In this document: positions 6,925 to 18,410 of the stretch, piece by piece | Position numbering within the stretch: the stretch's first letter is position 1 | Layout: every line of letters begins with the position of its first letter | Sequence record: ON529855.1 | DNA length: 64,000 nucleotides | Reading direction: 5' to 3' (one strand) | Notes under the pieces: model-generated | What the model saw: the letters and a program-made list of their open reading frames with translations, nothing else | What the model was told of the DNA's origin: nothing | Database searches by the model: none | Translations under genes and position numbers: made by a program

Positions 6925-7295
6925 GAGTGAATCTCGTCGCGCCCGTCCAGCGCGTCGTCGCGCTGGCACAGGTCGACCAGGCGGTGGACCGAGAGATGGC
7001 GATCGTAGATGGCGCAGCCGTCGAACTTGAACAGTTCCGACGCTTCATGCATCAGGGCGCGCTGCACCGCCGCCCAGAGCGTCTGGACGATCTCGGTATC
7101 GGTCATCCACTGCGACAGCTTCCACTTGCGGCCCTTCCATTCAATGGGCAGGCCGGTGGAGGTGTCGACGCCGTCAGGGCAGATGATCTGGCACCAGGGC
7201 TCGTCGATCGAGCCCGAGACCTTGAACGTGAAGCCGGGATAGCGGCATCGCGCCACCACCGCCTCCAGTTCGGCGAAGGTTTTCGGATCGAACAT
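6921..7295 (-). CDS. hypothetical protein (124 aa)
   Basis: ORF; GRKW...S...T..E.VQT...A....MHEA.E.F pattern seen in phage proteins. Confidence 0.7.
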   Translation of the reverse strand: MFDPKTFAELEAVVARCRYPGFTFKVSGSIDEPWCQIICPDGVDTSTGLPIEWKGRKWKLSQWMTDTEIVQTLWAAVQRALMHEASELFKFDGCAIYDRHLSVHRLVDLCQRDDALDGRDEIHS

Positions 7296-7825
7296 CAGGC
7301 GGGCGGCCGGGCTTTCGCCCGCGCCTCCAGCGCTGCCATGAGGCGGCTGTTGTCGTAGCGGACCTGACCCGGCAGGGCGGCCTTCAGCGCCTTCACATCC
7401 TTGATGTGACGGGTGAACATCACCACCGGCGGCACGTCATCCGCCAGGGACTCGCCGGTGTAATGGTACATCTCGGCTTCGATCACCAGGACGTCGCCGT
7501 CAAAGACCTTGACGCGAGGACCGGTCAGTCCGGCCTTGTAGCCATTGTGGGAATCCCAGGCCTGACCCAGTTCCCCTTCGAAACGGGGGTCCTTGAGGTC
7601 GACGCGCACGTCGATAGGCCAGGTCTCCTGACCAATGACGTGACCGTCAGCCTGGACCTGCTTGATCCAATCCACGGCGAGCGAGGCGTGCTCATGGCGG
7701 AAGGCCTCCTGCGTGAAGGTCACGGCGCGCAGCGTCGGTGGCGTCACGGCAGCCAGGGCGGCGGCGGGTAGGGCGCTCAGCGCCGCAGCGGCGCCGGCGG
7801 ATTTGAACAGGGTGCGGCGGTTCAT
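7295..7825 (-). CDS. twin-arginine (Tat) signal-containing exported protein (176 aa)
   Basis: MNRRTLFKSAGAAAALSALPAAALA: RR-x-hydrophobic-K, hydrophobic core and AxA cleavage site; SD GAGGAG. Confidence 0.7.
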   Translation of the reverse strand: MNRRTLFKSAGAAAALSALPAAALAAVTPPTLRAVTFTQEAFRHEHASLAVDWIKQVQADGHVIGQETWPIDVRVDLKDPRFEGELGQAWDSHNGYKAGLTGPRVKVFDGDVLVIEAEMYHYTGESLADDVPPVVMFTRHIKDVKALKAALPGQVRYDNSRLMAALEARAKARPPA

Positions 7826-7835
7826 CAGGGACTCC

Positions 7836-8084
7836 TCAGTCGAGAGGGATGTCGTGATAGGCGAGCCAGTCCTGGAGTTCCCCGCGCGAAGAGAAGTCAT
7901 TGACCTCCAACTCGCCCGAGGCCCCCGACAGGGTGCAGCCCCAGTAGCCTTCATCGTCATCCTGTTCGAGGAATTGCGCCGTCACGTCGTCGTCTTCGGC
8001 CGCCTCCCCGAAGCGCTCGAACCAGATCAGACCGAGGTCGTCGCCGGGTTGCAGCACGGGGGCGTTGAAGAAGTCCTGACGCAA
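7836..8084 (-). CDS. acidic hypothetical protein (82 aa, TTG start)
   Basis: GAGGA 6 nt upstream of TTG. Confidence 0.65.
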   Translation of the reverse strand: MRQDFFNAPVLQPGDDLGLIWFERFGEAAEDDDVTAQFLEQDDDEGYWGCTLSGASGELEVNDFSSRGELQDWLAYHDIPLD

Positions 8085-8104
8085 GACGCATCCTCAGAGA
8101 AAGT

Positions 8105-8351
8105 AGAGTGGGAGCGAGGGCGGACGACGCATGAGCACAGGGCAAAAAGCACAGGGCAAAAAGCATCCCAGCAAACGTGTCACAAACCCCGAGCAATAGA
8201 GCAGCGCCATTGTTTCAGGCGGCCCGAAGGCACGTTGTTTGATCGGGGGCAGCACGACACGATCCCATAAAAGGGTGGTGCGTATGTTTTCCGCATCTAG
8301 GCCCGAAGGCCTTGATGTTTTGGGCGCCGCCCGTATCCTCGCTCCCACCCC
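8105..8351 (-). ncRNA. candidate novel structured RNA (~245 nt)
   Basis: 12-bp stem (8337-8348 with 8108-8119) stacked on a 10-bp stem with 2 G-U pairs (8324-8333 with 8121-8130); two cUUCGg hairpins (8294-8317, 8222-8231); 14-nt tandem repeat 8134-8165; lies in a 313-nt ORF-free gap in a genome where gaps are usually <20 nt. Confidence 0.7.
8134..8165. repeat. tandem repeat, 14-nt unit agcacagggcaaaa x2.3
   Basis: Exact copies at 8134-8147 and 8148-8161, plus partial copy 8162-8165. Confidence 0.9.
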
Positions 8352-8359
8352 TCGGTTCA

Positions 8360-8379
8360 GGCAGGCCCTAAGGCCCGCC
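8360..8379 (-). other. 8-bp GC-rich hairpin between 198-aa ORF stop and the candidate ncRNA
   Basis: GGCGGGCC-UUAG-GGCCUGCC on minus strand (one G-U pair). Confidence 0.6.
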
Positions 8380-8397
8380 GTCCCCAAGCGGGTGAAA

Positions 8398-8994
8398 TCA
8401 GTTCAGCTTGAAACGCTCGACCAGCGTCACCACAGCCTCGGGCAGGGTGATGCGATGGCCGGCGTTCAGGCCCAGCAGTTCGTCGGCGATCTCCGCCTTC
8501 TCGCGGCGAATGTCGCGCAGGGCGTCCTCCAGGCCGTCGTAGGCCGAACGGGGGACCCGCACCGAAACGCTGTCGGCGGCGGCGGCGCGAACGCCGGCGG
8601 TCTTGGCGGCCTCGTGCTGCGCCAGGAGGGCTTCGAAGCGGCGCGGGGCCAGGACGACCTCATCGGACGCCGAGGCGGCGGGCGCATAGGCGAAGACCTG
8701 CGTCAGCAGCTTCTCCTTGCGATCGAGCAGCGCCTTGCGGGTCAGGACGTCGTTGATGCCTGAGGTGTGGAAGGCCTTGCCCATCAGGGCGCGCACGGCG
8801 TAGGCGGCCTCGGTCAGCGCCAGGGCGTCCTCCAGGGCGGTGCGCATCGCTTGGGCGGCGGCGTCCACCTTGCCGGCGAAATCGGGGGCCGTGTCGTAGA
8901 TGGAGAACGCCACAGCGTGCTCGGCGGACTGCTTCAGGGCTTCGTCTTGAAGCGATTTGGCGAGCGCGTTGGCTTTGCGCAGATTGACTTGCAT
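8398..8994 (-). CDS. conserved helical/coiled-coil phage protein (198 aa), possibly DIP1984-like
   Basis: Ala/Leu-rich heptad-like helices; MQVNLRKANAL... start and K.EI.DELL.LN...I.L end; SD GGAGGA; own promoter. Confidence 0.75.
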   Translation of the reverse strand: MQVNLRKANALAKSLQDEALKQSAEHAVAFSIYDTAPDFAGKVDAAAQAMRTALEDALALTEAAYAVRALMGKAFHTSGINDVLTRKALLDRKEKLLTQVFAYAPAASASDEVVLAPRRFEALLAQHEAAKTAGVRAAAADSVSVRVPRSAYDGLEDALRDIRREKAEIADELLGLNAGHRITLPEAVVTLVERFKLN

Positions 8995-9019
8995 CGGGTC
9001 CTCCGTAATTCGTTTGCCG

Positions 9020-9049
9020 TGTTTACTGGCACTTGGCGCCGTCTGTCAA
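9020..9049 (-). promoter_or_regulatory. sigma70-like promoter for 198-aa ORF and candidate ncRNA
   Basis: TTGACA (9044-9049) with TAAACA-like -10 about 18 nt downstream. Confidence 0.55.
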
Positions 9050-9056
9050 CTCTTAA

Positions 9057-9392
9057 TCACATCGGTTTCAGCTTGATCATCAGGGGAACGCCGTTGACGT
9101 TGAACCGCACGATCTCCACCCGATCCGCGCGCACCAGCTTCTGGATCGTCGCCGCCGAGAAGCTTTTCTCCTTGAAGGCCCCTTCGGCGTCACGGGGCTG
9201 TCCCATCACGTTGTAGAGCCCGAGGCTGTCGCGCTCCATGGCATGGGAATCGTGGACCGCCATCATCATCAGGGCGATCTCGGCGGCGGGGGCCACAGAG
9301 CCCTTACGCAGGCCGCCCAGGTAGCGGACGACCCGTTCCCGCTGCTGCGCCTGCAACTGCTGGCGAAAGGCGATCTGCGACGCGGTGGGCAT
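9057..9392 (-). CDS. hypothetical protein (111 aa, MPTASQIAF...)
   Basis: Start re-assigned; TGATG coupling at 9392. Confidence 0.6.
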   Translation of the reverse strand: MPTASQIAFRQQLQAQQRERVVRYLGGLRKGSVAPAAEIALMMMAVHDSHAMERDSLGLYNVMGQPRDAEGAFKEKSFSAATIQKLVRADRVEIVRFNVNGVPLMIKLKPM

Positions 9393-9649
9393 CAGAAGGT
9401 CGATTGCATGGCGGCGACATCCAGCACGATCAGGACGCCGGTGTGAACCCGCAGGCGATCGGAGTTGATGCCGGACAGGAAGACGGGGGCCTCGTCGGTG
9501 CCGGGTCGAATGACACAATAGGGCTGCTGCCGCAGGCGTCCGGCGTCAGAGGCGTGTTCAACGAGGGTCCAGGCGACCGCTTCGGCGTCGCCTCGGTCGT
9601 GCCCCAACCGCGTCAGCCAGTCGACGCAGTGGGTGTGGAAATGGCGCAT
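9392..9649 (-). CDS. hypothetical protein (85 aa, MRHFHTH...)
   Basis: Start re-assigned to ATG 9649. Confidence 0.6.
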   Translation of the reverse strand: MRHFHTHCVDWLTRLGHDRGDAEAVAWTLVEHASDAGRLRQQPYCVIRPGTDEAPVFLSGINSDRLRVHTGVLIVLDVAAMQSTF

Positions 9650-10642: not shown

Positions 10643-10644
10643 GG

Positions 10645-10698
10645 TCAGAAACTCAGGCAGATGATCAGGAGGCAGGTCAAAAGGGGCAGGGCGCGCAT
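10645..10698 (-). CDS. 17-aa hydrophobic microprotein MRALPLLTCLLIICLSF
   Basis: Strong SD GGAGGACCCC-ATG; stop 2 nt before next ATG; first ORF after a promoter-like gap; below ORF-track cutoff. Confidence 0.55.
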   Translation of the reverse strand: MRALPLLTCLLIICLSF

Positions 10699-10764
10699 GG
10701 GGTCCTCCAAAAAAGTCGTCGGAAGACCCCTATCGCACTGAGTGCCGTTCGTCAACACACGGCG

Positions 10765-15302: not shown

Positions 15303-15331
15303 TGTGTAAAGGAATGATCTGCGGAGATCAA
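15303..15331 (-). promoter_or_regulatory. phage promoter with CATTCCTTTACA motif
   Basis: TTGATC-N17-TACACA. Confidence 0.7.
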
Positions 15332-15897: not shown

Positions 15898-15925
15898 GGG
15901 GTCCTCCTCTTGCGTCGTCCAGGCG

Positions 15926-15954
15926 GCTGTAAAGGAACCCCATGCGTCTGTCAA
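15926..15954 (-). promoter_or_regulatory. phage promoter with TTCCTTTACA motif
   Basis: TTGACA-N17-TACAGC. Confidence 0.75.
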
Positions 15955-15966
15955 CGGACGCGGTCA

Positions 15967-18287: not shown

Positions 18288-18316
18288 GGGCTTTCTCCTG
18301 TTCGTCGTCGACCTGG

Positions 18317-18345
18317 TGTGTAAAGGAATGTTCTGCGGCTGTCAA
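18317..18345 (-). promoter_or_regulatory. phage promoter with CATTCCTTTACA motif
   Basis: TTGACA-N17-TACACA. Confidence 0.75.
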
Positions 18346-18410
18346 CAGGGTGTTCACTCGTGCGCTCCGCGCCCTCGTGCCCGGCTCCGCCGGCCCCACC
18401 TTCGGTCAGG

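Follow-up and report, generated by a model that had tools for sequence, protein, structure and literature searches.

A conserved structured RNA beside the gene of an uncharacterized helical protein in Brevundimonas phage vB_BpoS-Domovoi and other large phages

What occupies an unannotated gap of 313 nt among the densely packed genes of Brevundimonas phage vB_BpoS-Domovoi, a 352-kb siphovirus of the Dolichocephalovirinae? We analyzed a window of 64,000 nt from its sequence record ON529855.1 (positions below are those of the window; record position = window position + 124000). The 1.8 kb around the gap that we queried matched the Domovoi record at 100% identity. The gap (8085-8397) is flanked by the genes of a 198-aa protein (DOMOVOI_02640) and an 82-aa protein (DOMOVOI_02630), inside a run of tightly packed minus-strand genes, and no feature is annotated in it in Domovoi, Papperlapapp, Kabachok, Marchewka or Bambus. 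The initial annotation of this stretch had described the other gaps as typically below 20 nt, which is roughly right, but the first 32 kb also contain gaps of 51-123 nt; the 313-nt gap is by far the largest there. We found that it encodes a conserved, folded non-coding RNA on the minus strand, which belongs to no described family and seems to represent, among cultured phages, a widespread RNA that accompanies one uncharacterized protein.

Structure and conservation of the gap RNA

A tblastn search with the 198-aa protein recovered nine cultured phages only: the five phages of the Domovoi clade, Gurke and Kikimora (36-37% protein identity), and the Caulobacter phages CcrPW and CcrColossus (30-32%). 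The gene order is kept in all nine, namely the 198-aa gene, an unannotated gap of 284-314 nt and the 82-aa gene, with the gap lying directly 3' of the 198-aa gene on the same strand in Domovoi and likewise in the eight other phages. We built a covariance model, R2, from the Domovoi clade alone on our own structure of 66 bp, and it matched the syntenic gap over its full length in Kikimora and Gurke (128 and 126 bits, E ~1e-38) as well as in CcrColossus and CcrPW (70 and 69 bits, E ~1e-20). When the window was searched with R2, no second copy of the RNA was found.

We computed the folding energies of both strands and compared them with those of shuffled sequences. The minimum free energy of the minus strand was -109.3 kcal/mol (z = -4.0), which 0 of 200 shuffles equalled, and the fold of the plus strand was weaker (z = -3.0). 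The parts of the predicted fold are as follows.

8103-8388, minus strand: whole conserved RNA element, consisting of the leader hairpin P0, the main domain P1-P1' and a 3' UCUAC tail
8351-8388, minus strand: P0, a CUUGG/CCGAG base helix (8388-8384 with 8355-8351) around an apical hairpin of 8 bp (8379-8360)
8337-8348 (8348-8337), minus strand: P1 5' strand, GUGGGAGCGAGG, of the 12-bp closing helix
8324-8333 (8333-8324), minus strand: P2 5' strand, CGGGCGGCGC, 10 bp
8294-8317, minus strand: P3 hairpin with a cUUCGg loop (8312-8299 inside), the most variable part of the RNA
8264-8275, minus strand: P4, a small hairpin CCC UUUUAU GGG
8176-8261, minus strand: core domain P5-P8, with P5 (8261-8256 with 8181-8176) and P6 (8248-8243 with 8192-8187)
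8231-8222 and 8221-8205, minus strand: hairpins of the core domain, P7 (cUUCGg) and P8, respectively
8131-8175, minus strand: U/G-rich tract with UG every 7 nt, holding a 14-nt tandem repeat; predicted mostly single-stranded
8121-8130 (8130-8121), minus strand: P2 3' strand, GCGUCGUCCG, partner of the P2 5' strand
8108-8119 (8119-8108), minus strand: P1 3' strand, CCUCGCUCCCAC, partner of the P1 5' strand

The main domain thus spans 241 nt (8348-8108, minus strand). Its P1 and P2 form a closing rod of 22 bp, which leads to a junction bearing P3, P4 and the P5-P8 domain, and a tract of ~45 nt returns to the rod. The initial annotation had proposed a structured RNA on this strand, and both the folding energy and the compensatory changes in relatives described below bear it out. 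The 12-bp and 10-bp helices, two cUUCGg hairpins, four AAACA motifs, 14-nt repeat and 8-bp hairpin that it had listed all lie where it had placed them on the minus strand, although its term 'rod-like' was wrong, since a multi-branched core sits on the closing rod. It had also pointed out that two G-U pairs work only on the minus strand, which we confirmed: they lie in P2 and become A-C mismatches on the plus strand, so that the closing helices P1 and P2 are strand-specific. The hairpin at 8360-8379 is present, but it is not separate as had been thought; it belongs to the conserved element and is enclosed by the invariant CUUGG/CCGAG helix. P0 comes immediately behind the 198-aa gene's stop codon, and it is followed by UGAACCGAGG instead of a U-run.

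To examine covariation among the three clades, we made a helix table manually, since MAFFT misaligned P5 and P6 between clades, and afterwards realigned the sequences with Infernal. The manual table contained double changes at 23 of 37 positions and a single mismatch type. We then compared the R2 alignment with shuffled alignments and with slid controls, as follows.

Cells forming a standard pair: 93.8% observed, 75.0% in shuffles, 38-45% in slid controls
Pairs changed on both sides: 38 of 66 observed, 21.8 in shuffles, 3-8 in slid controls
Covariation score: 0.310 observed, 0.122 in shuffles (0 of 500 reach the observed score), 0.035-0.074 in slid controls

Covariation at homologous loci had been set beforehand as the test on which the structured-RNA interpretation would stand or fall, and its outcome was strongly positive.

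The compensatory changes were distributed over nearly every helix. P1 had double changes in 7 of its 12 pairs among clades, with 96.7% of cells paired; its strands are GUGGGAGCGAGG/CCUCGCUCCCAC in Domovoi, GCGGGGACGGAAG/CUUCCGUCCCCGC in Gurke and GUGGAAGCGG/CCGCUUCCAC in Colossus. For P2, the corresponding values were 5 of 10 pairs and 84% of cells. All six pairs of P5 were compensatory and 100% of its cells paired (CGUGUC/GACACG, GACAUC/GAUGUC and AUCUCU/AGAGAU in Domovoi, Gurke and Colossus, respectively). In the Infernal alignment, compensatory pairs numbered 3/6 in P6 (5/6 in the manual table), 2/3 in P7 and 2/4 in P8. P3 is only 65-77% identical between close phages, and its hairpin is nonetheless retained, with 7 of 9 pairs compensatory; for example, its stem CAUC...GAUG in Domovoi becomes GAUG...CAUC in Colossus. 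P4 is present in the Domovoi and Colossus clades (CCGC UUAC GCGG in the latter), and it is absent or unclear in Gurke. The base helix of P0 is invariant in all three clades, its apical stem differs among them in both length and sequence, with compensatory changes in 5 of 8 pairs, and the sequence CUUGG ... CCGAGGGG around P0 is likewise common to all three. Straight after P1, CUCUA(C/U)C is found in Domovoi, Kabachok, Gurke, Kikimora, CcrPW and CcrColossus, and CCUUAC in Marchewka and Bambus.

The RNA is also constrained at the level of nucleotides. The RNA core (gap positions 122-293) shows 97.7-98.3% identity among phages of the Domovoi clade, compared with 77-93% at the third codon positions of the flanking genes; the stretch of the core that includes the U/G tract differs at 3 of 172 aligned positions from Kabachok and at 4 of 173 from Marchewka. 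Together with the variability of P3, this indicates selection on nucleotides in the core and on structure in P3. The initial annotation had suggested that the AAACA linkers of the 5' half could pair with the U/G-rich 3' half. Our results contradict this, as the linkers of Kabachok and Marchewka are 65-77% identical and the tract 98% identical, with no compensation, and the AAACA motifs are absent from the Gurke and Colossus clades.

We considered whether the gap could instead be coding, as an open reading frame (ORF) of 97 codons (8094-8387) spans it in Domovoi. The longest sense frame is reduced to 61 codons in Kabachok, 77 in Marchewka and 52 in Gurke, and the close relatives Kabachok and Marchewka carry indels of 1 and 2 nt, which are not multiples of three. 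The frame is therefore broken in relatives, and we rejected ORF 8094-8387 as a protein gene, an explanation that the initial annotation had itself named among those that would overturn its reading.

Relatives in metagenomes and the periodic U/G tract

To look beyond cultured phages, we performed back-translated searches with the protein alignment and obtained 80 IMG/VR loci and 55 metagenome loci, on contigs of up to 360 kb. All but one of the IMG/VR loci (79/80) were low-GC (~35-46% G+C), and the remaining one was CcrPW itself. Protein identity to Domovoi was 22-36% at the low-GC IMG/VR loci and 23-36% at the metagenome loci. The metagenome scan with the protein thus yielded distant relatives only, at most 36% identical (at most 30% over the full length), and no further high-GC relatives. 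A search of IMG/VR with the exact high-GC RNA pattern found only CcrPW, CcrColossus and two chance matches in coding DNA. The G+C content of the RNAs is 29-46% in the low-GC group and 54-59% in the Domovoi-type clades.

In all 20 low-GC loci that we scanned with Rfam, the protein gene lies within a tRNA gene array. In three of them (L013 1832-2295, L014 562-1022 and L034 3946-4409), the protein-RNA pair is accompanied by GOLLD (RF02032, 187-205 bits) at a distance of up to ~1 kb, and the arrays around both comprise tens of tRNA genes in uncultured large phages. Many low-GC loci have an RNA of 258-279 nt directly after the gene, without an Rfam match. Its layout consists of a closing helix P1, a P2 of 10 bp, two hairpins (one with a CUUGAAA loop), an enclosed domain, UUUGUGG and six UG heptads. 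The enclosed domain is preceded by UGCU and closed after GCUGCUUGUUGCU, for which the Domovoi counterpart motif is GCUGCUCUAUUGCU, and most copies carry an ACC or GCC tail behind P1.

We built a second covariance model, R1, from 15 low-GC RNAs, and with it located a similar RNA next to the gene in at least 43 of the 134 metagenomic loci. These include 21 copies directly 3' of the gene, scoring 50-261 bits (at least 137 bits except for one truncated copy), and 22 weaker, mostly full-length matches (E 2e-4 to 0.05); of the latter, 19 belong to other sub-lineages and are located directly 5' of the gene, and three (L021, L057 and L141) directly 3' of it. The low-GC RNAs covary as well: 92.8% of cells pair, compared with 76.2% in shuffles, with double changes in 22 pairs compared with 12.8 and a covariation score of 0.419 compared with 0.178. 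Variants recognized by eye, L090/L091 and L110/L140, share the design; for example, L110 reads GUGGAUUG...CAAUCCAC-ACC. We also searched IMG/VR from the RNA side with a degenerate pattern and obtained 18 matches, one of which was a chance match (no R1 match) and another of which ended at a contig end. In all 16 informative matches, the gene immediately precedes the RNA on the same strand and ends 152-166 nt before the motif, and seven of these contigs were new.

In L031 (3077-3343) and other low-GC RNAs (columns 176-180 with 258-262 of alignment A6), the 3' strand of P7, AGUCGC, could also pair with GCGACU, a distal segment that forms either P2 or a local hairpin. In L012, the two possibilities are retained with other letters (UUACUU/AAGUAA). 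This potential for dual pairing hints at alternative conformers.

Both groups contain the U/G tract. Its 14-nt exact tandem repeat in Domovoi (UGCUUUUUGCCCUG twice) is two UG heptads doubled, and the tract is common to all three high-GC clades as a conserved sequence motif. Copies of UG in an exact 7-nt register number five in Domovoi and six in the Gurke and Colossus clades and in most low-GC RNAs; at other periods, at most three copies were found. For Domovoi and the Gurke and Colossus clades, none of 1000 dinucleotide shuffles equalled the observed number. For the 17 RNAs with five or six copies, 0-1 of 1000 dinucleotide shuffles reached the observed number, and for two low-GC RNAs with only four copies, 2 and 7 of 1000 shuffles did so. 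Examples are the heptads of CcrColossus (UUGUGGG UUGCGCG UUGUCCG UUGUAGC UUGCCCU UUGUCCA) and L016 (UUGUGGC CUGCUUA UUGUAAU UUGCAAA UUGCAGG UUGCUGA). In the low-GC family alignment, we found no compensatory change in the helices that RNAalifold placed inside the heptad tract, so that what is conserved in the tract is its sequence.

The high-GC and low-GC RNAs agree in context, size, order of elements, heptad tract and tail, and in both a closing helix of the two ends surrounds internal hairpins and a domain, with five or six UG heptads before the 3' closing strands. In every high-GC locus, the top-ranking match of a low-GC nhmmer profile was at the correct place and on the correct strand. We regard common descent of the two groups of RNAs as probable, since the proteins encoded next to them are homologous.

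Transcription, possible function and alternatives

The genes and the promoter-like element that surround the RNA are as follows.

8398-8994, minus strand: gene DOMOVOI_02640, coding for the all-helical protein of 198 aa and conserved next to the RNA
7836-8084, minus strand: downstream gene of an 82-aa acidic protein (DOMOVOI_02630), with a Shine-Dalgarno sequence GAGGA 8 nt before its start codon
9021-9050, minus strand: promoter-like GTTGACA-N15-CAGTAAAC, in the 62-nt gap upstream of the 198-aa gene

All three clades have kept the promoter-like element, which is found also in Gurke, CcrPW and CcrColossus (L006, L008 and L009). It resembles the published Caulobacter sigma-73 consensus and is likely, judged by its sequence, to be a sigma-73-type promoter of a unit comprising protein and RNA. 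No promoter-like motif, including a sigma-70 consensus promoter on the transcribed strand, was found in the RNA gap itself. This distribution points to a single transcription unit: the protein gene and the RNA probably form one unit that reads on into the 82-aa gene, whose Shine-Dalgarno sequence begins ~25 nt after the RNA ends. The 82-aa protein is very acidic, with runs of D and E, and is conserved and syntenic only in the high-GC Brevundimonas and Caulobacter clades; we found no relatives of it in IMG/VR and no Pfam or PHROG match.

Other gaps of the window contain related signals. A recurrent intergenic motif, (A/G)ATCATTCCTTTACA, occurs on the minus strand at 15312, 15935, 18326, 19949, 26477, 28058, 29298, 31306, 38863, 41605 and 42649. 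In at least two gaps (15898-15966 and 18288-18410) it lies 14-15 nt after GTTGACA, and it is absent from the RNA gap; these sites are probably a set of phage promoters. The runners-up in gap size are 18288-18410 (123 nt), where a G+C-rich stretch is followed by GTTGACA...CCTTTACA, and 10643-10764 (122 nt), where GTTGACG is followed by the start of a possible small ORF. In addition, a 1011-nt gene annotated as 'major capsid protein' lies ~1.2 kb downstream of the RNA in Kabachok (L149 11135-12145) and Papperlapapp (L005 1-610). It is far from a structural module and absent from Domovoi, Marchewka, Bambus and Gurke, and may be a stray or satellite-like capsid gene. As it is an inserted extra gene of these two phages, we rejected a capsid-module context for the RNA.

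The AlphaFold2 model of the 198-aa protein (37 sequences) is an elongated all-helical bundle with a pLDDT of 90.9. Among solved structures, it had no significant match, the best being to BAR-like helices (E = 0.13). The protein has no Pfam match, and its PHROG, 25230, carries no assigned function. A profile search of 5.8 billion proteins gave at least 552 clusters of relatives, none with a Pfam domain. When BFVD was searched with Foldseek, the fold was found in Erwinia phage pEa_SNUABM_47, Vibrio phage Vp_R1 and the giant viruses Catovirus CTV1 and Yasminevirus; the matches are uncharacterized proteins of phages and of these two giant viruses.

What, then, might the RNA do? The RNA family has the gene of the helical protein as its neighbour in dozens of large phages, and a joint function of the two is therefore probable; this linkage is the case for a partnership. 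In our view, the best explanation is a processed non-coding RNA that forms a ribonucleoprotein with the 198-aa helical protein, an explanation to which we give about an even chance. The RNA would be transcribed with the upstream 198-aa gene from the conserved promoter-like element and then cut out of the transcript. Enzymes of tRNA processing (RNase P, 3' trimming and CCA addition) would be the likely agents, because P1 with its 3' tail (RCC or ACU) resembles a tRNA acceptor end and because the relatives lie among tRNA genes. The released RNA would bind the 198-aa protein to give a ribonucleoprotein, in which the folded part could serve as a scaffold and the evenly spaced UG heptads, six in number, as a multivalent single-stranded platform for an oligomer of the protein or for a host factor, by analogy with HutP and TRAP. 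The genomic context hints at a possible role of this particle in the metabolism of tRNA or translation-related RNA during infection. A bolder proposal, which we put forward tentatively and consider somewhat improbable, is that Domovoi provides the first cultured member of a kind of ribonucleoprotein not yet described from large phages: an ornate RNA of ~250 nt matured like a tRNA, whose six regularly spaced UG heptads are read by an oligomer of a dedicated helical protein without counterpart among solved structures, widespread in the tRNA/GOLLD islands of aquatic jumbo phages, and acting on the translation or tRNA machinery of the infected cell or on its tRNA-targeting defences. The interpretation of the initial annotation is partly supported overall; in view of the close linkage of the RNA to a single protein gene, 'protein scaffold' is the most fitting of the functions it had proposed.

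Several observations weigh against a single RNA family with a dedicated protein partner. No recognizable RNA-binding fold was found in the 198-aa protein by Pfam or fold search. The covariation alignments were fitted to models, and the independent clades in them number only three. In roughly two-thirds of the protein loci, no RNA was detected with R1. Judged by sequence or structure scores, the support for homology of the high-GC with the low-GC RNAs is weak: R1 gave the high-GC RNAs only 2.6-3.8 bits; the low-GC nhmmer profile gave E values of 7e-4 for CcrPW and 9e-4 for Colossus, but 0.19 for Domovoi; the reverse nhmmer comparison, of a high-GC profile with low-GC sequences, was not significant (E >= 1); and the best match of R2, run with filters off on eight low-GC loci, was the L031 RNA, in the right place but with only 9.5 bits (E = 0.027). 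Finally, the RNA continues into the next gene without a terminator, so that a purely cis-acting role has to be reckoned with.

Such a role, as a long structured untranslated region by means of which the 198-aa protein or another factor would regulate the stability or translation of its own mRNA or of the genes downstream, without any free RNA, would suit an RNA that is co-oriented with its neighbours, lacks its own promoter and a terminator after it, and stops ~25 nt short of the 82-aa gene's Shine-Dalgarno sequence. Among the relatives, there is even a group whose RNA lies like a leader ~20 nt upstream of the protein start codon. However, its position flips between the 3' and 5' sides of the protein gene, the neighbour on its far side varies (the 82-aa gene in high-GC phages, tRNA genes on low-GC contigs), and so ornate a covarying structure (240-280 nt, with an ACC tail after its closing helix) is met more typically in stable RNAs; we therefore judge a cis-acting element unlikely. 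The heptad tract raises another possibility, that of an RNA-only homo-oligomer like GOLLD or ROOL, assembled for example via the tract, with the neighbouring protein incidental or a chaperone. Many low-GC heptads are UUGCAA or UUGCAU and thus self-complementary, the tract is conserved in sequence without intramolecular covariation, and the RNA shares the habitat of GOLLD and ROOL (phages and tRNA islands, with GOLLD adjacent in L013, L014 and L034), both of which form RNA-only nanocages (PMC12286853). The palindromic heptads, however, are not conserved in the high-GC clades, the RNA is far smaller than GOLLD or ROOL, and a tight two-sided linkage to one protein gene has not been reported for either, which makes this reading quite doubtful.

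The initial annotation had also raised the idea of a decoy. As such a decoy or sponge, the RNA would capture a factor of the host (RNase E, Hfq, ribosomal protein S1, cold-shock proteins or an RNA-sensing defence, for example), and repeated, conserved single-stranded U/G heptads are the type of multivalent site found in sponges. The GC|UUUUU units of Domovoi also resemble the published preference of RNase E. Nothing links the RNA to any host factor, however, and the same design recurs in phages of very different hosts with RNAs of 29-46% GC (loci 35-46%) and in the RNAs of 54-59% GC of the Domovoi type; this recurrence favours a phage-encoded partner, and we hold a sponge to be very unlikely. 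There is next to no probability that the gap is a DNA-level element (an origin, a pac site or the remnant of an inverted-repeat transposon) or a small protein gene, even though perfect 12-bp inverted repeats surround ~220 bp and the 97-codon ORF crosses the gap in Domovoi. The G-U pairs work only on the transcribed strand, the compensatory changes preserve pairing and not sequence, the element is single-copy in the window, and the ORF is cut short in Kabachok, Marchewka and Gurke (61, 77 and 52 codons). A MITE-like or other DNA repeat is rejected on similar grounds: the 12-mer occurs only at the two arms, near matches are below chance expectation in the window, R2 detects no second copy, and the arms covary rather than staying conserved.

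The ribonucleoprotein explanation is open to direct tests, because the RNA is present in cultivable phages: CcrColossus and CcrPW grow on Caulobacter crescentus CB15, a genetically tractable model host, and Domovoi grows on B. pondensis, so that expression, binding, deletion and structure are all accessible. The UG heptads are an unusual feature that is easily mutated. If confirmed, the pair would constitute a new Rfam family and a new protein family with a role, and the RNA might illuminate what phage tRNA islands do beyond supplying tRNAs.

Known families and comparison with known systems

We searched for the RNA among known families. Rfam 15 (4227 models) gave no match at the gathering thresholds in the whole window and none at E <= 10 in 7900-8600, in agreement with the initial annotation, which had been unable to assign a family; the low-GC counterparts in L031 and L016 were also unmatched. 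No description of the RNA was found in the full text of PubMed Central and bioRxiv. We rejected an intrinsic terminator or attenuator, as no terminator-like site was found on the minus strand in 7000-9600 and the U-run is missing after P0. A type III toxin-antitoxin system of the ToxI type does not fit either: the sole tandem repeat has a unit of 7/14 nt, compared with ~34-45 nt in ToxI repeats, and the neighbouring protein has no match to a nuclease family (PADLOC was not searched).

Like tmRNA, 4.5S RNA and other stable RNAs matured by tRNA enzymes, the gap RNA has a terminal helix formed by both its ends and an (A/G)CC tail, and its relatives lie among tRNA genes. We nevertheless rejected tmRNA, as ARAGORN predicted no tRNA or tmRNA genes in the window and, unlike tmRNA, the gap RNA has no T-loop, tag reading frame or Rfam match; the similarity in processing is purely inferred.

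CcrColossus has been listed among the phages with Ro60 and a Y-like RNA (PMC12135203, PMC4201824). The gap RNA resembles Y RNAs (YrlA) and their Ro60 systems in that its 5' and 3' ends pair in a long closing stem, its gene lies beside that of a presumed protein partner, and it has tRNA-like traits. It differs from them in having no TROVE neighbour nearby, no recognized T-arm and no match to the YrlA model, and in that its putative partner is an all-helical bundle of 198 aa. In Domovoi, Gurke, Kikimora, CcrPW and CcrColossus, no TROVE protein is annotated within 2.5-3 kb to either side, and Pfam identified none among seven neighbouring proteins. In view of the missing Ro60 (TROVE) neighbour, the lack of a model match (Rfam, E <= 10) and the lack of a tRNA-like gene predicted by ARAGORN, we rejected identity with Y RNA or YrlA.

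The heptad tract invites comparison with the targets of HutP and TRAP. HutP sites consist of NAG triplets with 4-nt spacers, which amounts to a 7-nt period, and the gap RNA likewise repeats a short motif (UG, mostly UUGC or UUGU) five or six times with a period of 7 nt in an otherwise variable single strand. Its motif is different, however, and the tract lies inside a large folded RNA and not in a leader-terminator switch, so that the analogy is one of principle only.

The closest parallel in setting is with GOLLD and ROOL, which are large phage non-coding RNAs found in the context of tRNA arrays and form RNA-only nanocages (PMC12286853). Like GOLLD (RF02032) and ROOL, the gap RNA is an orphan, highly structured phage RNA with relatives in or beside tRNA arrays. 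It is not GOLLD, as the RF02032 matches are to separate loci (L013, L014 and L034) and never to an RNA of the gap type; unlike GOLLD and ROOL, it measures 240-290 nt (compared with ~600-800 nt), is tied to one protein gene and contains the UG heptad tract. To our knowledge, GOLLD and ROOL are abundant, yet have no known function and no known protein partner. The general category, that of orphan structured non-coding RNAs of phages, is already known, and what is new is the RNA family and its putative protein partner. An RNA that shares the habitat of GOLLD and ROOL and is strictly linked to a protein gene offers a concrete biochemical handle.

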